Virus record (IMG/VR): IMGVR_UViG_3300033995_001164
Span: 124,001-188,000 of that record
DNA length: 64,000 nucleotides
Direction: 5' to 3' (one strand)
Shown here: positions 9,579-27,467 of the stretch, in pieces
How the letters are laid out: each line of letters opens with the position of its first letter
How positions within the stretch are numbered: position 1 is the first letter of the stretch
Translations under genes and position numbers: made by a program
Notes under the pieces: model-generated
Databases searched by the model: none
What the model was told of the DNA's origin: nothing
Seen by the model: only the letters and a program-made list of their open reading frames with translations

Positions 9579-9602
9579 AAAGGACTGAGTTTTCAGTCCT
9601 TT
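9579..9602 (-). terminator. Intrinsic terminator
   Basis: 10-bp stem AAAGGACTGA-AAAC-TCAGTCCTTT on the minus strand followed by TGTATTT; overlaps the TGA at 9595-9593. Confidence 0.7.
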
Positions 9603-9751
9603 GTGTTATCTTCTAACCACTTATCTAATAAATATTTTCTAACGAATAGTGGCATTCCTTGAAAATCTTGATAGGTTATGTTCATTAATTTGTTCAAATA
9701 GTAGAATTCGTCTATTTGTCCTTTTCTATAATCAGAAGAAAGGACGAAAAA
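9593..9751 (-). CDS. Probable frameshift extension of the tail assembly chaperone (lambda gpGT-like)
   Basis: 52-codon +1 frame FFVLSSDYRKGQIDEFYYLNKLMNITYQDFQGMPLFVRKYLLDKWLEDNTKD*, bounded upstream by TAG, with no ATG until codon 23; overlaps the T6 run of the upstream gene. Confidence 0.6.
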   Translation of the reverse strand, partial: FFVLSSDYRKGQIDEFYYLNKLMNITYQDFQGMPLFVRKYLLDKWLEDNTKD

Positions 9752-10475
9752 ACTCTACCCCAAATCCGACATTAACTGTCATCTTTTCTCCTGATGGGGT
9801 GATTAAAACTCTACTTAAATCTAATCTTGGTTCATTTTCATTCATAAATTTTCTTATGAATTTTGAATCCATGATTGGCATTTGTTCAACAAACTTGGCA
9901 ATCTCTGATTTATCGGTACTTCCGTTCACCTCTACAATTTCTTTTTGAAGTCTCCAAGTAATTTTTGGAACTACTCTACCAACAGGGTAAGAATCTTCTA
10001 ATTTACTTATCTCTAAAATTTCACCATAACTCAAAGGTTTTAATTTAATAGTCGCCTGTGATTTTGGTAAATTAGTTATAAAGGTACCATCTTCATTAGG
10101 TGTCTGTCCATTAATAACTGATAATGTATCAAGTGTTACTGTCGCTTGAAATGGTTTTCGTGTTGATGGGTCAACTAAATTTAAATTAATTTCAGGACCA
10201 AATCCTGTATTTCTCAAAAATATTAGAACTGCCTCAACGTCTCCCTCTAACATATCCTCAACCTTAAGGTCCGGTTCATAGATTTTACTTCTTAATAGTG
10301 TTGTGGTCATATCATTACCACCAGCCATTAAAATGTTTTCATCATTTGCCGTTAGATAACCTACCTTGATAGATTTCTTTTTATTTTTGTAAAACACTCC
10401 TCCCGATGGTAGTGGTACTACATCATGTGGTAACGTAAAGTTTTGTTGTCCGTATTCGATTGCCTGATTTTCCAT
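9732..10475 (-). CDS. Tail assembly chaperone / T4 gp26-like baseplate hub assembly protein
   Basis: 247 aa; VPLPSGGVFY...LTANDENILM...GDVEAVLIFLRNTGFG, ending FGVEFFRPFF; lies between tube and tape measure genes. Confidence 0.75.
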   Translation of the reverse strand: MENQAIEYGQQNFTLPHDVVPLPSGGVFYKNKKKSIKVGYLTANDENILMAGGNDMTTTLLRSKIYEPDLKVEDMLEGDVEAVLIFLRNTGFGPEINLNLVDPSTRKPFQATVTLDTLSVINGQTPNEDGTFITNLPKSQATIKLKPLSYGEILEISKLEDSYPVGRVVPKITWRLQKEIVEVNGSTDKSEIAKFVEQMPIMDSKFIRKFMNENEPRLDLSRVLITPSGEKMTVNVGFGVEFFRPFF

Positions 10476-10477
10476 AT

Positions 10478-10513
10478 AAAAAAATAACCGTAAAGTTTAT
10501 GTCTTTACGGTTA
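10478..10513 (-). terminator. Intrinsic terminator after tail tube gene
   Basis: Perfect 11-bp stem TAACCGTAAAG / CTTTACGGTTA, 7-nt loop, followed by T7 on the minus strand. Confidence 0.8.
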
Positions 10514-10569: not shown

Positions 10570-11058
10570 TCAATAAACTAATACACATCTATCCATTCTT
10601 AACGATACACTAATATCTGCAAGAGCGTCAGTACTATACGCCAATGAACCAAAGTCAACACTAGTTAAGAATGTACCATACAAAATCCATTTCTCAACAA
10701 CAACTCCTGTTGGGTCTAACATCTCAAGGTCAATATCTTTCTTATAACCCGCAGCATATCCCATACGACCTGTAACAGATTCAGCATGTAAACGAACCCA
10801 CTCCATAAGAGCTTGTGATGCAGATGGACCAATTGGGTCTCTAAATTTAACAGGTATCTCATCCCAATTAAATCTACCCGCAACATACGTTGAGGTATTT
10901 AGAAATTGAATTTCTGTAGGTTGAATTTTAATTTTAGGTCTTGCAGCACTTTCTACAAACCATTCGTTAATCCCTAAGCTTGATGGAAACCTTAGTATGA
11001 ATCGATTCTGTCTTTTCGGTTCGTAAGGAATCGGCATTTTCATCAATAAATCAGCCAT
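10570..11058 (-). CDS. Tail tube protein (T4 gp19-like)
   Basis: 162 aa; EPKRQNRF, GRFNWDEIPVKFRDPI, YKKDIDLEMLDPTGVVVEKWILYGTF; near the sheath gene. Confidence 0.9.
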   Translation of the reverse strand: MADLLMKMPIPYEPKRQNRFILRFPSSLGINEWFVESAARPKIKIQPTEIQFLNTSTYVAGRFNWDEIPVKFRDPIGPSASQALMEWVRLHAESVTGRMGYAAGYKKDIDLEMLDPTGVVVEKWILYGTFLTSVDFGSLAYSTDALADISVSLRMDRCVLVY

Positions 11059-12107: not shown

Positions 12108-15100
12108 TTAAATATTCTCGAACGAAGCTCCTGTTGGAGTAATGAAGAATTCAATATCGATGAACTCTAATGCTTTCGTCGGTTTTAAGTAAATTTTACC
12201 TGTTAAAGTATTTCTATCTAAATCCTCAGGTGAAGATGAAACAGTTACACGGAAATCGTATAAACCTCTATCTCTTCTAATTGAGTCTAAGATTGGGTTA
12301 ACACTATCTAAGAATTGTTGTCTAACAATTTGGTCGTTTTGTTCAAACAATAATCTTACAGCCACCGCTGAAATCAACTTACGAGCTTGAAGTAATAATC
12401 TTCTTACATTCAATCTATTAAGTGCCGTATCGGCAATTTGTAATGTTTTATTACCCCAAATTACTGTACCAACATCAGAGAAAGTTGCGATAGGGTTAAT
12501 TCTACCTTGGTACAATGTATCTCTATCTTCTTGAGTTAATTTAACTCTCGCCTTAACTGAGTTTACAAGACCTCTAGTATAACCCGCAGATGCGAACCAT
12601 GGGAAAGCGATGTTATCAGTTAACGCTAAGTTTCTACAAACCTCACCTGTTGCCGGTAAATAAATTTGTGTATTATTTACAGTATCTCTTGTTAAAACCC
12701 AAGGATAATAAGTTGCGGTATAGTTAGAGTCAATTCCGGTATTATCTAAATTATCTACTGATTCTTGAGGATAAATAATATCCTGTGGATTAGTTGAGTC
12801 CGGAGTATACATATTGTAATCCGGAGTTGTTGCAATATAAACTGAATCCGCTCTTTGGTATTGAATCATGTCAATAGTTTCTTCAACTAAGTTAGAGTTA
12901 TTGATGTAGTCAATACTTGATGTTGCAAATACATTAATGTTTGTAGCTTCAGGGTTTCTAAATGTTAGAATACCCAGTAAGTAAGCATAATAGTCGGTAT
13001 TAGCAAAATCTTGAGTGTTATCAGCAACAGTAATTCTTTTAAATAAACCACTTCCGGTTGCGTTAGGGTATCGAGTTGAAGATGATGCTCCCGCTAAAAA
13101 TCCTGATTGACCTAATTGGAATCTATCTTGATTTGTTCTAAATTCTCTATAGATGTCCCAACCGTCGAATCCACCAGCAAAACATACAGTATATTTTCTT
13201 GAGTAGATGAAATAGTATGGATTTTCTTGAGTTTCAGGGTCTGTTCTAAATTCTGCAGTACCACATTCAAATGCAGTTTGACCACTAGTTAATGAACTAT
13301 TTGAAATTGTGACTACGGTTGCACCGGAATCCATGTGGAAACCTTTACTTACATAATTCCAAGACGCCCCTTCAATTGGTTGTGGGGCAATAACCCAAGA
13401 TTCTGGGGTTTGTTTACCTTTGTAAGATAAAAATGATTCGTCAATACCATATTGAGTTGAGAAACCTAAATAAGTTCTTCTAACAATATCACCCGGAGAT
13501 TCTACTGTGTTTGGACCACCGGTTGGTGTACCGAATGGTGGATTAGCAATGGTTTCACCAGGGAAAAAATATTTTGTTTTAAATTTAGGGGTCGGTGATG
13601 GATTTAAAACTGAATCGTATTCTCTTTGAGTATATCCTTCAAACCCACAAGGAATTGCATCAATTGGGGCCTCATCCGCCATTTCAATCATTACGTATTT
13701 TGAAAGTAACGCGTATTCTCCGTTAGTGGAACCAAGTTTCTTAGCAACAAAGTTGTTAGAATTAGGGTCCATATTACAGTTAGTAAATTTTTCAATAACA
13801 ACTGGGTTTGAATCAGTGTCAAAGAAATTTCTAACTAACACATCAAATGTCATATTATTAAATGATAGGTTAGCAATTGAAACTTTAACTTCAGTATTTG
13901 CAGCATCTCCATCTGAGATTGAAACAAATTTAAATAATTTGTAAACTTTATTACCTCTTAATTCTGACACCAAATAAGGTGTACTTGGTGATTGATATTG
14001 ACCTACATTATACGCTATTGATGACGGATTTTCACTTTTAGCATCCGGTAATGCAACTAATTCAGGATTAATACCTTTTATATATCCTTGATTATAAGCG
14101 TATGCCAATGAACCAGGGTAAATCTCTTCAACAAATAAAGGAACCTCATTTCTTGATTTTCCAAAATTATCAACACCTAATACTTTAGTAATAAATTTTG
14201 AAGAAGCAGCAGATAAGTTAGTTTCAAATGTAAAATTATCCCCATCTTTAGTGACACCTGATAAACCAAATGAGGCATAAGGGTTTTTATCAATATCTGC
14301 GTATTGGTCAGTAGATAATAATGTAACATTAGTTAAACCACTTACCTCATAAATTGGTCCATGATTATCACTAGTTGAACTATTAGTATATAATGAAATA
14401 CCTCTTGAACGAAGAGTTGCAACAACCATGTCATTGTATTCAGTATAAGCCGTTCCGGTAAAACTGTAATAATCTCCCGATATAGTTCCCGAAAAACTAT
14501 CGGTTAATCCGGTAGTGATGGAATCAAACGCATAGTTAAATGAATAACCTGAATAAGAGTTACCCGCATAATTATTAAAATTCGCATAGTACCATGAATC
14601 ATTTTGACCGGCAGATAAATCATTATTTGTTAAATTAAGAGAGTCAACACCATATGAATTCACAACAGTACCATATTGACCTATTAAAACATAATAATCA
14701 CTTTCAGGGATTGAACCGTAAGCGATTGCCGTTGTTGCAGACAATGTAGGATTACCAACTAATGTTATTATAGTATTTGTAATGTCGTTATTATATGTTG
14801 ATGTACTTCCATCTGAAAGTCTGTATTGTGTATTAAAGTTAGCCTGAACCACAGTTGGAAATGAACCACTAATAAAATTAACAGTTTCAGCACTGGTTGA
14901 ACCTGTAAAAGATACAGACCAAGATGTTGCACCTGTTGGACTTTGATTTATTGTAGTAGGGTCAACATTTGCAGTAACTCTAATACTCCAAGATGGTCCT
15001 GCATCATATCCTGATAAACCTAAGATTCTTGTAACAAACAATTGGTTTGATTGTTGCAAGTAAGATTTAGCAATATATGCCGCTTCATATTTAGGGATTT

Positions 15101-15320
15101 GTGTGTTAACAAATTTGGTTGGTTCTGTTCCTCCGAAAAAGGCTTGGAATTCGTCATAGTTTGTTATAAATACCGGTTCAAATGCGGGACCTTTTAAAGT
15201 CTCACCAACTAAACCTAAGGTAGTAACACCTACACTTTGTGCTACGAATGATAAGTCAGTTTCTGAAGTGTATACTCCCGGTGAAACGAAAACTTTTTGA
15301 TTTGCTTGTGCTGTTGCCAT
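12108..15320 (-). CDS. Tail sheath protein (T4 gp18-like)
   Basis: 1070 aa; N-terminal FVSPGVYTSETDLS and GLVGETLKGP; C-terminal PWFASAGYTRG, LYQGRINPI, WGNKTLQ, RLNVRRLL, GKIYLKP. Confidence 0.95.
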   Translation of the reverse strand: MATAQANQKVFVSPGVYTSETDLSFVAQSVGVTTLGLVGETLKGPAFEPVFITNYDEFQAFFGGTEPTKFVNTQIPKYEAAYIAKSYLQQSNQLFVTRILGLSGYDAGPSWSIRVTANVDPTTINQSPTGATSWSVSFTGSTSAETVNFISGSFPTVVQANFNTQYRLSDGSTSTYNNDITNTIITLVGNPTLSATTAIAYGSIPESDYYVLIGQYGTVVNSYGVDSLNLTNNDLSAGQNDSWYYANFNNYAGNSYSGYSFNYAFDSITTGLTDSFSGTISGDYYSFTGTAYTEYNDMVVATLRSRGISLYTNSSTSDNHGPIYEVSGLTNVTLLSTDQYADIDKNPYASFGLSGVTKDGDNFTFETNLSAASSKFITKVLGVDNFGKSRNEVPLFVEEIYPGSLAYAYNQGYIKGINPELVALPDAKSENPSSIAYNVGQYQSPSTPYLVSELRGNKVYKLFKFVSISDGDAANTEVKVSIANLSFNNMTFDVLVRNFFDTDSNPVVIEKFTNCNMDPNSNNFVAKKLGSTNGEYALLSKYVMIEMADEAPIDAIPCGFEGYTQREYDSVLNPSPTPKFKTKYFFPGETIANPPFGTPTGGPNTVESPGDIVRRTYLGFSTQYGIDESFLSYKGKQTPESWVIAPQPIEGASWNYVSKGFHMDSGATVVTISNSSLTSGQTAFECGTAEFRTDPETQENPYYFIYSRKYTVCFAGGFDGWDIYREFRTNQDRFQLGQSGFLAGASSSTRYPNATGSGLFKRITVADNTQDFANTDYYAYLLGILTFRNPEATNINVFATSSIDYINNSNLVEETIDMIQYQRADSVYIATTPDYNMYTPDSTNPQDIIYPQESVDNLDNTGIDSNYTATYYPWVLTRDTVNNTQIYLPATGEVCRNLALTDNIAFPWFASAGYTRGLVNSVKARVKLTQEDRDTLYQGRINPIATFSDVGTVIWGNKTLQIADTALNRLNVRRLLLQARKLISAVAVRLLFEQNDQIVRQQFLDSVNPILDSIRRDRGLYDFRVTVSSSPEDLDRNTLTGKIYLKPTKALEFIDIEFFITPTGASFENI

Positions 15321-18670: not shown

Positions 18671-21559
18671 ATGGATGTAAGTCTCGAGTCAAAAGCATTG
18701 TCCTTATTGGAAACCTATGAAGGTGGTAATAACTACCTTATTGAATTAAAACGAAAGTCACAATTAAATAGAAAGTTTTACCCAACAAGGAGTCAATCAG
18801 AATACATAATTAACAATCACGATAAACAACCCAAAGTTGCCAAGAAATGGGTAATTCTTGATACCTACTTCGCACAGAAACTTGCGGATGATAAATTGTA
18901 TACTGAAATACCACAAAAGGTATGGGTTGAGAAATTATTATCGGATAAAGAAAAAGCGTATCATATTTGGGGTAGAGTATTTGAAACCGAAGAGTTCCAT
19001 CATTTTTGGTTACCTAAAGCGGCAATCATTAAAGATAACACCGTTAAAAACGTTGTAATTGATTATTCAAAATACTCTAATCGTCCTCCTCTTGAACATC
19101 AAAAAGAAGCCGTCCAAAAATTAGTTGAGAATAAGAAGTTTATTCTTGCTGACGATATGGGGTTGGGTAAAGCTGAATTTGTTGAGAATAAAGTATTTAC
19201 CCCATATGGTAGAAAAAGAATTGGAGATTTAGAAATTGGTGATGAAGTTATTGGTAGTGATGGTAAGAAATGTAATGTTCAAGGTGTTTATCCTCAAGGA
19301 ATTAAAGATTTATATAGAGTAACATTTAACGATGGAGTTTCTGTCTTAGTCTGTAAAGAACATTTATTTTCTGTTAGGGCGCGAAGTTTTGGTCATAATA
19401 CTAAAAATTCTCGTAATAAAAAAAACATTGTTTTATCTATTGGTCAAATGATTGATGAAGAATTATTTTTAGAAGTCTCAGGTGAGAAAAATAATATTAA
19501 TAGAAATTATAAATTTAAAACTTATTTTAAGGAAAAAGGAGGTAATAGTAAGTGGCAAATACCTATTGTTAAACCAATTGAATTTGTTGATAATGAAATC
19601 CCGGTAAATCCTTATTTACTTGGGTTAATTTTAGGTGATGGAGGTATCAGTCAAAAAAGTATTATGTTTAGTTCCGCAGATGATGAAATCATAGAATATA
19701 TTAAAGAATTATTACCTGAAAATACTCAAATAATTAAAAAGAAAAATACTAAATATGATTATTCCATTACAAAAAAAAATGGTCACAATAATCCTATCAC
19801 ACAAATTCTTAAAAATTTAAATTTAATGGGTTGTACTTCTCATAATAAATTTGTCCCGGATTGTTTTAAATATACCTCAATTGAAAATAGATTAGAAATT
19901 TTAAAAGGTTTAATGGATACTGATGGAACTTGTTGCCTCAATAAAAAAGGAAATTTTGAAGGGACTGAATTTTCAACTGTATCGGAAAGATTATGTGATG
20001 ATGTTATTGAAATCGTACATAGTTTAGGTGGTATTGCCAAAAAAAAAAGTAGAACAACTAACTATACATACAAGGGTGAAAAAAAAGAAGGTAAAAAATC
20101 TTATAGAGTTAACATAAAATTACCATCAGGGATGAATCCATTTAAACTTAAAAGAAAATACGATTTATACAATACTCCCGAAAAATATAAGGTTGGTAGA
20201 TATATTAAAGATATTAAATTTGAGGGTAATGGTGAGGCTATTTGTATTTCAGTAGATTCTCCTGATAAATTATATGTAACTGAACACGCAATTGTTACAC
20301 ATAACACAACTTCTACCATTATTGCCGCTTTAGAAACGGGAGCGAAGAAAATTTTAATTATTTGTCCCGCAACTCTTAAAATTAACTGGAAAAGAGAAAT
20401 TGAAAATTATTCGGATAGAAGTATCTATATCTCAGAAGGAAAACAATTTAGTACCGAAGATGATTTTGTTATCGTTAATTACGATATTATGAAGAATTTT
20501 CACGACCCAAAAAAGAAAGATGATTCTTTAATCTTAATGTCAAAATTTGATTTAATTATTATTGATGAAGCTCATTATATTAAAAATGCTCAAGCTCAAC
20601 GAACAAAACTTATTAATGACATTACAAAAAGTGTTGATAGGTTGTGGTTATTAACTGGTACACCAATGACTTCCCGTCCAATCGATTATTTTAATTTACT
20701 TAGTTTAATTGATTCACCTGTAGCCAAGAATTGGATGGCATATGTTATTCGTTATTGTTCTGGTTTTCAATTTAAAGTTGGTCCAAGAAAAATTTGGAAT
20801 GTTCAAGGGGCATCTAATCTTGAAGAATTACGAGATAGAACTGCAGGTCTTACTTTGAGAAGGTTGAAAGAAAATGTTTTAGATTTACCAGATAAAATTA
20901 TTACTCCGGTTTACTTAAGATTAAAGTCTAAACTTTATGAAGAAGTAATGGGTGATTATTACAATTGGTATGAAAAGAACCCTGAAGAATCAAAATCCTT
21001 AACAGTTCAATTCACAAAACTTACTAAAATTCGTCAAATTATTGCAGATGAAAAAATTACTCAAACAATAGAAATTGCGGAAAATATTATCGAACAAGAT
21101 AAAAAAGTCATAATTTTTTGTAACTTTACCGATTCATTAAATAAAATTACAGAACATTTTGGAAAAGCGGCGGTTAAACTCGATGGTTCAATGTCTAAAG
21201 TTGAGAGACAATTCAGTGTGGACCAATTCCAAGAAAATGATAAGATAAAAGTATTTGTCGGTAATATTAAAGCTGCCGGTGTTGGTATTACATTGACATC
21301 TGCTGAAGCGGTAATTTTTAATGATTTATCGTTTTTACCTTCCGACCATGCACAATCAGAAGACCGGGCATATAGATATGGACAAAAAAACAACGTATTA
21401 GTTTATTACCCAATTTTTGAAAATACAATTGAGGGAATTATCTACGACATACTTCATAATAAGAAACAAGTGATTGCAACCGTCATGGGAGATAATCAAA
21501 ATACTGCTGACGCAGCTGAAGAAATTATGACAAAAATTAATAGTTTAAGAAAAAAATAA
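18671..21559 (+). CDS. SNF2/SF2 helicase containing an intein
   Basis: Walker A LADDMGLGK|T interrupted by an intein; DEAH box, LTGTP, and helicase-C motifs QSEDRAYRYGQ. Confidence 0.92.
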   Translation: MDVSLESKALSLLETYEGGNNYLIELKRKSQLNRKFYPTRSQSEYIINNHDKQPKVAKKWVILDTYFAQKLADDKLYTEIPQKVWVEKLLSDKEKAYHIWGRVFETEEFHHFWLPKAAIIKDNTVKNVVIDYSKYSNRPPLEHQKEAVQKLVENKKFILADDMGLGKAEFVENKVFTPYGRKRIGDLEIGDEVIGSDGKKCNVQGVYPQGIKDLYRVTFNDGVSVLVCKEHLFSVRARSFGHNTKNSRNKKNIVLSIGQMIDEELFLEVSGEKNNINRNYKFKTYFKEKGGNSKWQIPIVKPIEFVDNEIPVNPYLLGLILGDGGISQKSIMFSSADDEIIEYIKELLPENTQIIKKKNTKYDYSITKKNGHNNPITQILKNLNLMGCTSHNKFVPDCFKYTSIENRLEILKGLMDTDGTCCLNKKGNFEGTEFSTVSERLCDDVIEIVHSLGGIAKKKSRTTNYTYKGEKKEGKKSYRVNIKLPSGMNPFKLKRKYDLYNTPEKYKVGRYIKDIKFEGNGEAICISVDSPDKLYVTEHAIVTHNTTSTIIAALETGAKKILIICPATLKINWKREIENYSDRSIYISEGKQFSTEDDFVIVNYDIMKNFHDPKKKDDSLILMSKFDLIIIDEAHYIKNAQAQRTKLINDITKSVDRLWLLTGTPMTSRPIDYFNLLSLIDSPVAKNWMAYVIRYCSGFQFKVGPRKIWNVQGASNLEELRDRTAGLTLRRLKENVLDLPDKIITPVYLRLKSKLYEEVMGDYYNWYEKNPEESKSLTVQFTKLTKIRQIIADEKITQTIEIAENIIEQDKKVIIFCNFTDSLNKITEHFGKAAVKLDGSMSKVERQFSVDQFQENDKIKVFVGNIKAAGVGITLTSAEAVIFNDLSFLPSDHAQSEDRAYRYGQKNNVLVYYPIFENTIEGIIYDILHNKKQVIATVMGDNQNTADAAEEIMTKINSLRKK
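19172..20305 (+). mobile_element. 378-aa intein with LAGLIDADG endonuclease (Ala1, class 3-like)
   Basis: Starts AEFVENKVF after GLGK and ends IVTHN before Thr+1. LAGLIDADG motifs LLGLILGDG and LKGLMDTDG; block F AICISVD has Cys at F4. Confidence 0.92.
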
Positions 21560-24752: not shown

Positions 24753-27467
24753 TTATTTTATATATTCTTCCCACCCTTCTTCCGCCAAATCATAAATGTA
24801 ATCAGGGCTAACACCAACTCTGTCCCAAAATTTTAGTTCTAAGTCTGTAATTTCTAATAACTCCTCCACAGTGTCTTGGTCACCATCTTTTAACGGATTC
24901 CCACTAATTAATTCACATTGAGACTTGGTAAATATACCTCTTTTTTCAGGTTCATTGACTAATAAATTATTTCTGACCTCATCTTGAAATACAACCATTA
25001 GTGGTAATAGTTTTTTATTGAAAGTAACAACAGCCCTTGCGACATTATAATCACCTTTTAAATCAGGGTTATCCGTTAGAATATCTTTATCTAATAAATA
25101 ACAATTCAATTGAACCCCGTCATTCTTTTTTTGTACATCTCCATGAGAAGCTCTTAACCCATTGTTAACATACATAATAACATCACCCAAATTAACTTTT
25201 AAGTTTTCTTGTATTGCTAATTCCAAATGAGCCATGCGTGACATACTATTTCCAGATTTTGTTTTAGTCGTCAATCGTTTCTTATAATCATCTAACGATA
25301 ATTTAACTCTAGCCCTTTGAGCAATTTTACTTAATGAAATTTCTTTATTATAAATCTTTTGTAGGTATTCATAGTAATATTCAACAAACCCCTGACCATT
25401 ACCCTCTAATAATAATTTAACACCTTTGTCTAAAAATTCCTCAATATATAAAGGTAGTTTTTTAGATTTAATTGAATTTCCGGTTAGTTTAATTTTACCA
25501 TTAGTTTCCATTACGGCATAATTTTTTCGAGCGAGATTAATACAACTCACCCAAGTTCCGTCACAGTCTAAGGCCATTTCACCTTTTTGGAAAATATCGT
25601 TATATTCAGCAACATCGGCGTAATAACCCTCATAAACTTTATCTTTTTTTACTTTCCAATTTAACCCTTTACCAATATATCTACGAGTTTCAACTCCATC
25701 GGGGATTGTAAAGTTCATACCATCAGTATCGCAAACCAAAGAAGTATAACCTTTTTTGGTAAAAAACTTTAACATCTGTCTTAAATATTGTCTACCGGTA
25801 CAGGTAATTTTTTCACCCTTATTCATATCTCCCCAAGCGTATACTTGTGGAGCCGATAAAGCACCAAATAACGAATTAATGAAAATCTTAATTGGTAACT
25901 GCTTATTACCATATGACTCAGATTTTGCTTTGTCTGTTTCATAAAACTCCTCAGCTAATTGTTTATATTTGATACGAGTATTACGGAAATAGGTTAACAT
26001 ACCTTTCATTGCTCCCGTAACATCACAATCAGGAAATACATCGTGTACCAATTGAATTGAGGGATATAGGGAGCTAAAGTCAAGTTTTAGTACATTCTTA
26101 CTATAACCAACTTTTAAGAGTCTTGAAAGACCCCCTACGAAGTCAGTCTTAGGTTCTTTAACTGGAATGGCTAAATTATATTTATATGACCACGCTAAAA
26201 GTAACATTCTCCACAGACTTGCAGTACCCATTGTTGAAACCCTTTCATATGTTGTTGGAATCATTGCCGCCAATAAGAATGAACCTTGGTTGAACTCTTG
26301 GTCAACTTTAAGGGTTTCATCTAAGTCATCGTCAAGATACATCTCTACTAACTTATCTCCACTAGTTTTCTCGTAAGTATCAATTCGTCTTTTACATATT
26401 TCATCAATCTTAGGGTCAACACCAACTTTCTTGTAATTACCATTAGTAGTGTTTAACCAAAAATCTTCCTTGTTGGCATAAAATGGACCAATGTCTAAGT
26501 GGTCAATGTAAACACGACTTGGAGATTCCGCATTAATGTATTTGGTGATATATTTTAAACCAGCCGCTTTAATACTTGAGTTGATTGCTTGAGCCCTACG
26601 AACCGCATGGATAATATCAATAACGTTATAACCCCAAATAGAAGTTTGAGTATAAGTCTCAACCTCATTAGCCAATTTTAACATACCATCTTTACGAGTA
26701 TAAGAATGGTTAGGGTTTAATGATTTACATACCTTTTTCAAATCAATCCCCAATATTTTACTTCTTTCAAATATCCAATGCCAGTCAAAGTTTGCCGAGT
26801 TATATCCACCAATAATTGATGGCTTAAGTTCATTGATTACTTTAAAAAATTCAATGATTGCCCCCTTTTCTTCGTTTTCATCAGTACACTCAATCACTCT
26901 ATGGAATCCTTTATTGGTTTTGATTCCAATCATAAAGATACGACCATCCTTAGGTTCAAGGGAGGTCGTCTCCAAGTCATAAACCATTCGAGTAACCTCG
27001 TTATAGTTTTCAAACCCTTTGAATAATCTTTTTTCTTTGGATACAAGGTATTGTTCCACCGGAGATAAAAGAGTTATTTTATCCTTGGCTTTATCACCCC
27101 ATGGGTCACATCCTCCATCTCTAAAGAATTGGATAAGTTCTCTATATCCTTTCATGGATTTAACCAAATAGGTTAAGCCCTTTTCAAGACGTTCATTTCC
27201 ATGAGTTTCCAATTTCTCAATCAGAATTCCATACTTGGACATGGCTTCTTTCTGAGCAGCCCTTGAATCGTTATAAAATTTTAGTTGTTTTAAATCACCC
27301 ACCCAAGCGAACGGGGTAAAAGTGTCTTTACGGATTTCTTTTCCTTTGCCAGGAACTTCACGTACTTTGTAAATACAGTTGTCTCGGTAGTCATACTCGA
27401 TGGCAACTATAAATTCTTCCGGGTCATTTCCGTGGAGGAATGACTCAATTTCTTTACTGTCTATCAT
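24753..27467 (-). CDS. Family B DNA polymerase
   Basis: 904 aa; Exo motifs YDLET and GYNSANFD; Pol motifs DFSSLYPS, KIFINSLFG and CDTDG. Confidence 0.95.
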   Translation of the reverse strand: MIDSKEIESFLHGNDPEEFIVAIEYDYRDNCIYKVREVPGKGKEIRKDTFTPFAWVGDLKQLKFYNDSRAAQKEAMSKYGILIEKLETHGNERLEKGLTYLVKSMKGYRELIQFFRDGGCDPWGDKAKDKITLLSPVEQYLVSKEKRLFKGFENYNEVTRMVYDLETTSLEPKDGRIFMIGIKTNKGFHRVIECTDENEEKGAIIEFFKVINELKPSIIGGYNSANFDWHWIFERSKILGIDLKKVCKSLNPNHSYTRKDGMLKLANEVETYTQTSIWGYNVIDIIHAVRRAQAINSSIKAAGLKYITKYINAESPSRVYIDHLDIGPFYANKEDFWLNTTNGNYKKVGVDPKIDEICKRRIDTYEKTSGDKLVEMYLDDDLDETLKVDQEFNQGSFLLAAMIPTTYERVSTMGTASLWRMLLLAWSYKYNLAIPVKEPKTDFVGGLSRLLKVGYSKNVLKLDFSSLYPSIQLVHDVFPDCDVTGAMKGMLTYFRNTRIKYKQLAEEFYETDKAKSESYGNKQLPIKIFINSLFGALSAPQVYAWGDMNKGEKITCTGRQYLRQMLKFFTKKGYTSLVCDTDGMNFTIPDGVETRRYIGKGLNWKVKKDKVYEGYYADVAEYNDIFQKGEMALDCDGTWVSCINLARKNYAVMETNGKIKLTGNSIKSKKLPLYIEEFLDKGVKLLLEGNGQGFVEYYYEYLQKIYNKEISLSKIAQRARVKLSLDDYKKRLTTKTKSGNSMSRMAHLELAIQENLKVNLGDVIMYVNNGLRASHGDVQKKNDGVQLNCYLLDKDILTDNPDLKGDYNVARAVVTFNKKLLPLMVVFQDEVRNNLLVNEPEKRGIFTKSQCELISGNPLKDGDQDTVEELLEITDLELKFWDRVGVSPDYIYDLAEEGWEEYIK

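Follow-up and report, generated by a model that had tools for sequence, protein, structure and literature searches.

A probable +1 programmed ribosomal frameshift in a T4 gp26/gp51-family hub chaperone gene of an uncultured phage

The chaperone frameshift is among the most conserved recoding events in tailed phages. In phage λ (gpG/gpGT), and also in P2 (E/E+E′), a gene between those for the tail tube and the tape measure yields two proteins with a common N terminus, a shift near the 3′ end adding a short second domain to the longer one, and this arrangement is conserved despite sequence divergence. The G-T frameshift has been described as conserved in long-tailed phages "except T4" (PMC5009743). 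T4 has two separate genes and no frameshift at this point; their products, gp26 and gp51, are listed as hub assembly chaperones, and T4, whose assembly requires gp51 although the particle does not contain it, is the only phage in which the function of the family is known (PMC3004832). Here we describe a computational analysis of a 64,000-nucleotide stretch of DNA (the window), bases 124001 to 188000 of the IMG/VR virus record IMGVR_UViG_3300033995_001164, a genome of 309,177 bp and 31.6% GC that is rated complete and belongs to a phage present in many lake-water metagenomes. The window carries, on its minus strand, a gene of the T4 gp26/gp51 family that most likely undergoes +1 programmed ribosomal frameshifting to give products of 247 and 293 amino acids (aa).

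The locus shares with the λ system the gene position and the persistence through sequence divergence; its two predicted products would have a common N terminus and differ by a short domain added by a shift near the 3′ end, and the best matches of the modeled fold in the PDB, modest in score, are tail assembly chaperone (TAC) structures. It differs in the shift itself, which would be +1 on UUU_Y here rather than −1 on an X_XXY_YYZ heptamer, and the protein exceeds the solved TACs by ∼100 residues and is by sequence a member of the T4 gp26/gp51 family. With T4 gp26/gp51 it shares a PF12322 match above the cut-off and the predicted fold of gp26-like and hub assembly proteins, and in T4 too the family adjoins the hub and tape measure genes; the difference is that one gene here appears to make both forms. 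A presumed +1 G-T shift in the haloarchaeal myovirus HSTV-2 would also be a +1 version of the chaperone frameshift (PMC5009743), but HSTV-2 is unrelated in sequence. In the Listeria phages PSA, A118 and A500, a +1 frameshift likewise extends a tail-related protein (PMC5009743); there, however, the slip is on CCC, beside a stop codon or a pseudoknot, and the genes concerned encode capsid and tail-shaft proteins, not a chaperone. Our literature search, which left subscription journals outside, found no description of a frameshift in gp26/gp51-family genes. The locus most likely represents a +1 form of the chaperone frameshift in a member of the T4 hub-chaperone family, conserved over a very large group of uncultured phages.

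All junction coordinates given below are on the minus strand. The short form (P0001, 9732 to 10475, 247 aa, C terminus ...GVEFFRPFF*) ends in frame 0 with GAG (9755-9753) TTT (9752-9750) TTT (9749-9747) CGT (9746-9744) CCT TTC TTC TGA (9734-9732). The +1 frame is closed upstream by a TAG at 9757-9755, after which an open reading frame (ORF) of 53 codons (P0124, 9596 to 9754), beginning SFFVLSSDYRKGQIDEFYYLNKLM, runs to a TGA at 9595-9593, the last triplet of the 5′ arm of a terminator hairpin. From 9745 downward, P0124 forms the 50-residue tail of a modeled 293-aa long form (P0123). The +1 TAG and the 0-frame TGA thus set the limits for the shift at 9732 to 9757, an overlap of seven codons with the T6 run (9752-9747) inside, and 3′ of the shift site the sequence is dual coding, with RPFF* as the frame 0 reading and VLSS D as the +1 reading. 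Past the 0-frame stop, the −1 frame is closed after 6 codons, 14 codons from the start of the overlap. An earlier reading of this DNA from its letters alone (the sequence-only reading) had quoted the end of the chaperone gene exactly, and its further description, of a +1 frame closed by a TAG just upstream, open over a long distance and ending inside a terminator, with an overlap of about seven codons that includes a T6 run, proved accurate. The first ATG of the +1 frame is its codon 24; a TTG stands at codon 20, and there is no ATG, GTG or TTG before it. Many genes of this genome overlap their neighbors, and an open +1 frame by itself is therefore no rarity; the frequency of such frames after gene ends is uninformative, as the overlaps inflate the distribution, and it is conservation of the open +1 frame, not openness alone, that exceeds chance.

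To follow the tail through related phages, we scanned 161 related metagenomic loci (31 to 100% identity) with a 65-position hidden Markov model (HMM) built from 58 unique tails. The tail lies in the +1 frame across the stop in 156 loci and in the −1 frame in 2; 2 loci are without a tail and 1 has it fused in frame. Among 80 related viral contigs of 75 to 100% identity, 78 reach the end of the gene, and all 78 stop at codon 248 (TGA or TAA) and keep the +1 tail, the peptide reading SS[DN]YRKxQ[IL]DE[FY]YYL ... MP[LIV]F[VMI]RKYLL[DN]KW.E[DE]N.KD and then a stop. The +1 arrangement is also kept in diverse loci at 31 to 60% identity. An exhaustive profile-free search (E ≤ 0.001) gave 1268 relatives as 50%-identity cluster representatives; nearly all full-coverage representatives among the best 150 of these end 2 to 8 residues past an [FL]F[WRYLF]P motif, and this shared end point holds at 30 to 40% identity and with N-terminal extensions of up to ∼200 residues. 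The comparisons indicate that the +1 arrangement is ancient and widespread.

The +1 frame of the tail evolves as a protein-coding sequence. Nonsynonymous to synonymous substitution ratios (dN/dS, Nei-Gojobori) are 0.083 for the tail in the +1 frame and 0.112 for the gene body, compared with 1.9 and 0.97 for the other two frames of the tail DNA. Similarly, in 43 unique close sequences the site variability by codon position is 0.09/0.07/0.24 in the body (frame 0) and 0.11/0.06/0.24 in the tail (+1 phase). Between positions −18 and 0 relative to the stop, these sequences vary at two sites only, as would be expected of two overlapping frames under selection; one of the two sites is CGT or CGC, a difference that is silent in frame 0 and gives Val or Ala in +1. 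Purifying selection acts on +1 codons 6 to 19, so that conservation starts at the overlap, ahead of the TTG (codon 20) and the ATG (codon 24), neither of which is conserved, as many relatives have CTG, TTA or other Leu codons there. In many relatives frame 0 is two codons longer (RPFFGL*), so that the S-S-D-Y residues conserved in the tail come before the 0-frame stop; this excludes termination-reinitiation. On the fusion model P0123, the match to phrog_150 reaches profile position 252, 20 positions more than the 232 reached without the tail. These comparisons indicate that translation of the tail takes place in the +1 frame and does not begin at a separate start codon.

Several proposals of the sequence-only reading bear on these data. 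Its suggestion of a frameshift into the +1 ORF, in a T4 gp26/gp51-like pair, gains support from the 156 of 161 loci and the dN/dS of 0.083. It had proposed two conservation checks, on the FFRPFF* overlap and on the +1 codons before the ATG; the former is almost invariant at the nucleotide level, and the latter keep their residues despite synonymous changes, whereas Leu often takes the place of the ATG. It had also predicted that annotation pipelines would miss the tail. Indeed, the best 120 database relatives of the 247-aa protein (75 to 95% identity, from many samples) are called as proteins of 243 to 249 aa, 115 of them at exactly 247 aa, and when called proteins of 161 to 512 aa were searched for words from the tail part of the fusion model, none carried the tail. 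No close relative is therefore annotated as a fusion, and fused forms are found only among distant representatives.

A frame change that adjoins a homopolymer, the classic place for indel errors, could also reflect a sequencing or assembly error or a decaying gene, that is, a single 293-codon ORF with a miscounted homopolymer. The same stop and the same offset, however, recur in hundreds of independent assemblies from various studies and clades, down to 31% identity, and both frames are under purifying selection, so the comparative data already refute the error reading, which we regard as having next to no chance of being right. The junction is free of substitutions and indels in independent lake metagenome DNA contigs (runs X5 and X6), and contigs of related strains, taken from two runs that are filed as RNA libraries (X20 and, only as a guess, X19), cross it without indels. 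The comparative evidence indicates that the frame change is neither an error nor the mark of a pseudogene.

Natural variants of the family place the tail in other arrangements. It is fused in frame in P0249, P0273 and L113 and in the second paralogues of L085 and L086, and these natural fusions align residue for residue with the conceptual fusion. Specifically, EFLGVTPDYRKN of P0249 matches FFGLTLNYK of L084 (+1) and FFVLSSDYRK of the window (+1), and the fused EFFLPKNLAGKYKE of L113 matches the −1 reading FFFPKSLAGDYKK of L098. In L098 and L153, the tail is in −1 on GAT TTT TTT TTC CCA, a T9 run. The first gene of L085 and of L086 is without a tail, and the next gene is a second paralogue with the tail in frame. 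The F[WY]P motif of frame 0 is kept in these short, nonshifting paralogues as well, and the C terminus of the short form is therefore a protein feature in its own right. Both products thus appear to be under selection.

Tandem T4_baseplate paralogues were observed in L085, L086 and the P0182 contig, the short first one ending LFWP or LFYP plus a few residues and the longer second one bearing the tail, an arrangement reminiscent of the T4 gp26 and gp51 pair. Two cultured jumbo phages carry the tail in the −1 frame. In Ralstonia phage RsoM2USA (L181, MG752970.1 at ∼253025), the junction reads GTT TTT TTT TCC GAG TAA and the tail is unannotated; in Xanthomonas phage Xoo-sp13 (L182, MN047793.1 at ∼196434), the −1 tail follows U_UUU_UUU and is partly annotated as a separate 60-aa ORF from an internal ATG. 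Both are probable unrecognized −1 frameshifts or slippage sites. The tail of the window, being in +1, does not fit a −1 slip on an X_XXY_YYZ heptamer; −1 tails on U_UUU_UUU were seen only in L098, L153 and these two jumbo phages. The T4-like cyanophage S-SM2 has a tail-like ORF in −1 after gp26, with its own ATG 12 nucleotides past the gp26 stop. In a megaphage clade of ∼412-kb IMG/VR contigs (L165 to L169), the chaperone homologue is ∼330 to 480 aa long, with the 0-frame end ...VFLNISDG[RG]E[EK]S*; the tail, read in +1, has a conserved ATG that lies 7 codons ahead of the upstream stop, lacks an in-frame UUU_Y and is probably a separate protein.

The free-standing tails of the megaphages and S-SM2, together with the ORF annotated separately in Xoo-sp13, raise the alternative that the tail of the window is likewise a small protein of its own, made by noncanonical initiation or reinitiation and not fused to the chaperone. 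This is unlikely, since +1 codons 6 to 19 are under purifying selection although no ATG, GTG or TTG precedes codon 20, the TTG and ATG are themselves not conserved, and in many relatives conserved residues lie upstream of the 0-frame stop. Moreover, the in-frame fused homologues show the tail to be the natural C terminus of the chaperone domain, and AlphaFold models the fused form confidently, with a predicted local distance difference test score (pLDDT) of 93. The family thus supplies the tail module in several ways.

The protein belongs to the T4 gp26/gp51 hub-chaperone family by both sequence and fold. The short form matches PF12322 (T4_baseplate) over residues 31 to 213 with 26.6 bits, above the cut-off of 24.5, and phrog_150 "baseplate hub" with an E value of 3.4e-11; PF12322 is also precomputed on most close relatives of the 247-aa protein. 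An AlphaFold (AF2) model of P0001 has a pLDDT of 87.6 and, searched against BFVD, matches a baseplate hub subunit of Bacillus phage SP-15 (E 9e-17, TM 0.82), T4-like entries named "baseplate hub assembly protein" (E 9e-13) and gp26 of Aeromonas phage 25 (E 2e-5). Against 48,161 PDB chains, the first three ranks of the P0001 model were YqbN (3klu, Z 5.6), Rbstp2171 (3fgx, Z 5.5) and the HK97 TAC (2ob9, Z 5.3), which are the three known TAC structures (PMC9603447). These matches involve residues ∼125 to 224 of the short form and cover most of each target. Ranks 4 and 5 were a protein of an element resembling phage-inducible chromosomal islands (5ir0, Z 4.6) and a phage YuA protein (3pes, Z 3.9), and from rank 6 the matches were unrelated (Z ≤ 3.5). 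The modeled TAC fold match is modest supporting evidence and not proof, and the label "tail assembly chaperone", drawn from gene position and this modest fold match, is a correspondingly modest one.

The fused homologue P0249 gave an AlphaFold model with a pLDDT of 93.4, in which the tail forms three to four helices with pLDDT values of 82 to 98 over 10-residue blocks, lower only at the last few residues. A Foldseek search of the fused model against the PDB returned no match. The tail HMM found no gp26 or gp51 match in the T4 region, and a profile of the N-terminal domain found nothing significant against single T4 sequences; by hhalign, the tail profile aligned with the C terminus of T4 gp51 (residues 219 to 245) at E 0.056, which is only suggestive. 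As a separate observation, the 2246-aa database protein P0192 contains 32 separate stretches that match chaperone residues 192 to 235, a long repeat array.

The site of the shift can be narrowed by comparison. In 15 loci including the window, the +1 stop lies 5 nucleotides before the second Phe codon (the slip codon), and in relatives the 0-frame stop follows 4 to 8 codons after that codon and is not always next to TTC; the shift therefore takes place within ∼5 codons, E-F-F-(R/W)-P. The only slippery element common to all 156 of the +1 loci is UUU_Y, with CUU_U in two (L089 and L090), and the next 0-frame codon, rare or served by a single tRNA, is CGU, CGC, CGG, CGA or UGG, or CUA in L081 and CUC in L121. 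In the window, the proposed site is UUU UUU CGU (9744 to 9752), with UUU_C at 9749-9746. Both UUU_Ynn and UUU_CGU are documented +1 sites (PMC5009743). The closest parallel is influenza A PA-X, with its UCC_UUU_CGU cassette, where tRNA-Phe moves from UUU to UUC ahead of a rare CGU and no 3′ structure is needed (PMC5009743). It differs from the present case, in which the ribosomes are bacterial, the upstream codon is UUU and not UCC, and relatives use UGG, CGC, CGG, CGA, CUA or CUC as the next codon. Bacterial UUU_Ynn +1 sites such as that of Yersinia YopN-TyeA have the same slippery core (PMC5009743). The prfB (release factor 2) site, CUU_UGA, likewise involves a P-site slip onto UUY, and the CUU_U of L089 and L090 is similar, but here there is neither a stop codon in the A site nor a Shine-Dalgarno (SD)-like stimulator.

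The homopolymer at this site (T6 here, T7 in relatives with TTT TTT TGG) invites another explanation, transcriptional slippage, in which RNA polymerase drops one U on the U6 run, so that a small share of the mRNAs carries the long form as a single frame and ribosomes do not shift. A polymerase slip in the run would give the same protein as a ribosomal slip, and the −1 relatives L098, L153 and RsoM2USA have T9 runs, a length known to provoke slippage (PMC5009743). On the other hand, U6 is short for efficient transcriptional slippage, and at least 12 loci from several clades have the +1 arrangement with runs of only 3 to 4 T and with UUU_Y or CUU_U kept. Specifically, several clades have an interrupted T run (TTC TTT TGG, TTT CTT TGG, TTT CTA, TTA TTT TGG) but retain UUU_Y or CUU_U, which favors tRNA re-pairing over polymerase slippage and over a −2 move. 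In addition, only CGN, UGG, CUA or CUC follows the run, a restriction that matters to the ribosome and not to the polymerase, and the RNA-library contigs, which show the majority species only, are without an indel across the run. We therefore consider transcriptional slippage improbable.

The sequence-only reading had left the event as +1 or −2. The +1 part is supported by the universal UUU_Y, and the broken T runs make the −2 part unlikely; as a general mechanism, a −2 shift was rejected on the same grounds, UUU_Y or CUU_U being kept where the run is broken. TTC-TGA, which it had noted in the overlap, was not upheld as the shift site, as the slip most likely takes place on UUU_C, where the T run ends (UUU_CGU), with the stop 4 to 8 codons after the slip codon. 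An antizyme-like shift at TTC_TGA was rejected as a general site for this distance and for the conserved tail residues that precede the stop.

We also considered quadruplet decoding. ARAGORN reports, at genome positions 26185 to 26272, a tRNA with the four-base anticodon aagg (Rfam tRNA 39.3 bits, cut-off 29), and this 88-nucleotide tRNA-like RNA of the phage, with AAGG in an 8-nucleotide anticodon loop, could read CCUU (9743-9740) and so shift the frame by +1. AAGG is complementary to CCUU, and CCUU is invariant in the overlap of close relatives. Infernal, however, pairs the arm of this gene differently, giving a 5-nucleotide loop, and the gene sits among tRNA-like and YrlA-like elements outside the tRNA cluster. 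Relatives with CCU-A or CCU-G have no matching quadruplet; in G004 an odd tRNA-like gene carries taca, and its closest homologue is different along the entire arm. The probability that one four-base sequence matches a 7-codon window by chance is a few percent. Quadruplet decoding is thus very unlikely. The region around the aagg gene (genome 24900 to 28100, locus L171, outside the window) is a cluster of tRNA-like genes with a common acceptor stem (AGUCAGG...) and small ORFs between them. A YrlA-like (Y RNA-like) match of 40.4 bits, below the gathering score, adjoins the aagg gene, and relatives carry elements similar to those of L171 with other loops (e.g., taca).

In the +1 ribosomal frameshift that we favor, most ribosomes would read GAG UUU UUU CGU CCU UUC UUC UGA and release the 247-aa short form ending FFRPFF. 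A fraction would pause with peptidyl-tRNA-Phe on the second UUU (9749-9747) and the rare CGU (9746-9744) in the A site. The tRNA-Phe would then re-pair +1 on UUC (9748-9746), and GUC CUU UCU UCU GAU ... would be decoded to the stop at 9595-9593. The resulting 293-aa long form would consist of the 243 common N-terminal residues and the 50-residue helical tail (VLSSDYRKGQIDEF...). A slip at UUU_C would give the junction peptide ...GFGVEFFVLSSDYR, and a later shift would give ...EFFR followed by PSSDYR or LSSDYR. Both products would be needed, as with λ gpG/gpGT, the shared domain acting on the tape measure and the hub at tail initiation and the tail adding a second contact. In this scheme we infer the exact slip codon, the efficiency and the binding target of the tail. 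CGU is presumably a slowly decoded A-site codon, judging by codon use in this genome, where the values per 1000 codons are 21.4 for AGA, 3.1 for CGT, 0.3 for CGC and 0.4 for CGG. A tRNA block at genome positions 229000 to 243000 (locus L172, outside the window) comprises more than 20 tRNA genes, among them tRNA-Phe(GAA), tRNA-Arg(ACG), tRNA-Arg(UCU) and tRNA-Trp, and so includes tRNAs that read the codons of the shift site.

Several points weigh against this account. By sequence comparison, a slip at UUU_C is indistinguishable from a slip one or two codons later, since the overlap is dual coding and so does not vary. Many relatives have UGG as the 0-frame codon, which is not a rare one, and the phage-encoded tRNA-Arg(ACG) and tRNA-Phe could relieve the pause. 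Folding and the alignments of relatives revealed no conserved 3′ RNA structure or usable SD-like stimulator, which would leave the slippery codon and the slow A-site codon as the sole determinants of efficiency. The megaphage and S-SM2 tails with their own ATG indicate that the tail can work as a separate protein, and the Z scores of the TAC fold matches are modest (5.3 to 5.6), below the level that would be safe alone. Two candidate stimulators were tried and rejected. A 3′ hairpin, GUCCUUU...AAAGGAC, has a folding energy of −9.6 kcal/mol but a z score of only −1.1, and its 3′ arm varies without compensating changes; an upstream GGGG, as an SD-like element, is invariant in close relatives and absent from distant ones. 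An SD core lies upstream of 1 of the 53 genes in the window, compared with 8% expected by chance, which together with the GC content of 31% suggests an SD-independent host such as one of the Bacteroidota.

We propose, tentatively, that the T4_baseplate (gp26/gp51) family is the T4-lineage counterpart of λ G/GT, with interchangeable ways of supplying the short and long forms, and that T4 gp26 plus gp51 represents a two-gene solution. The modes of supply may be a +1 shift (most uncultured lineages, this phage among them), a −1 shift on a U run (RsoM2USA, Xoo-sp13), a separate tail ORF (megaphages, S-SM2) and two paralogues. If true, the two-gene solution would account for T4 being the textbook exception where the chaperone frameshift is otherwise conserved. 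Confirmation of the frameshift would add a large, ancient family of bacterial +1 frameshift sites (1268 relatives), provide a testable hypothesis on the roles of T4 gp26 and gp51, and mean that annotation pipelines systematically miss a domain of 45 to 90 residues, cultured jumbo phages included. With its +1, −1, fused, split-ORF and duplicated-gene variants, the family also offers a comparative series for studying why two forms at a fixed ratio are needed.

The gene lies in a block of tail genes on the minus strand, which in 5′ to 3′ order comprises the sheath gene, a gene for a 276-aa protein, the tube gene, a hairpin, the 247-codon gene, the +1 ORF, a second hairpin and the gene for a 601-aa protein, followed by genes for a 1684-aa protein and a small gp25-like protein. 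The tail tube protein immediately upstream (10570 to 11058, 162 aa) matches phrog_4542 tail tube (E 6e-25) and, weakly, Phage_T4_gp19. The downstream neighbor (P0002, 7744 to 9549, 601 aa) is, from its position and size, the probable tape measure protein. It has no Pfam or PHROG match and no similarity to T4 gp29 by BLASTP; its language-model neighbors are PhageMin_Tail and TMP_3 clusters (score 0.91, a lead only), so that the siting of the chaperone gene between tube and tape measure genes is, on the 601-aa side, tape-measure-like at lead level only. In the whole 309-kb genome there is one N-domain, one tail and no second paralogue.

The block begins with the tail sheath protein (12108 to 15320, minus strand, 1070 aa; phrog_23, E 2e-54), whose matches to sheath profiles are confined to residues ∼840 to 1068, the N-terminal 800 residues being without a family match. 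Two terminators bracket the chaperone gene. The terminator-like hairpin in the gap after the tube gene (10485 to 10513, minus strand) has an 11-bp stem followed by T7, and the intrinsic-terminator-like hairpin after the +1 ORF (9579 to 9602, minus strand) has a 10-bp stem, a loop of 4 and a T-rich tail, with a folding energy of −15.7 kcal/mol (z −5.3 vs. shuffles) and a sequence that is kept in close relatives. This bracketing suggests stepwise attenuation from tube to chaperone to tape measure. Elsewhere in the window, a 962-aa ORF on the plus strand (18671 to 21559) matches DNA helicase profiles over residues 542 to 942, and its N-terminal half matches profiles that bear the names terminase large subunit, primase or helicase loader; rather than a terminase, the ORF probably encodes a P-loop primase-helicase fusion.

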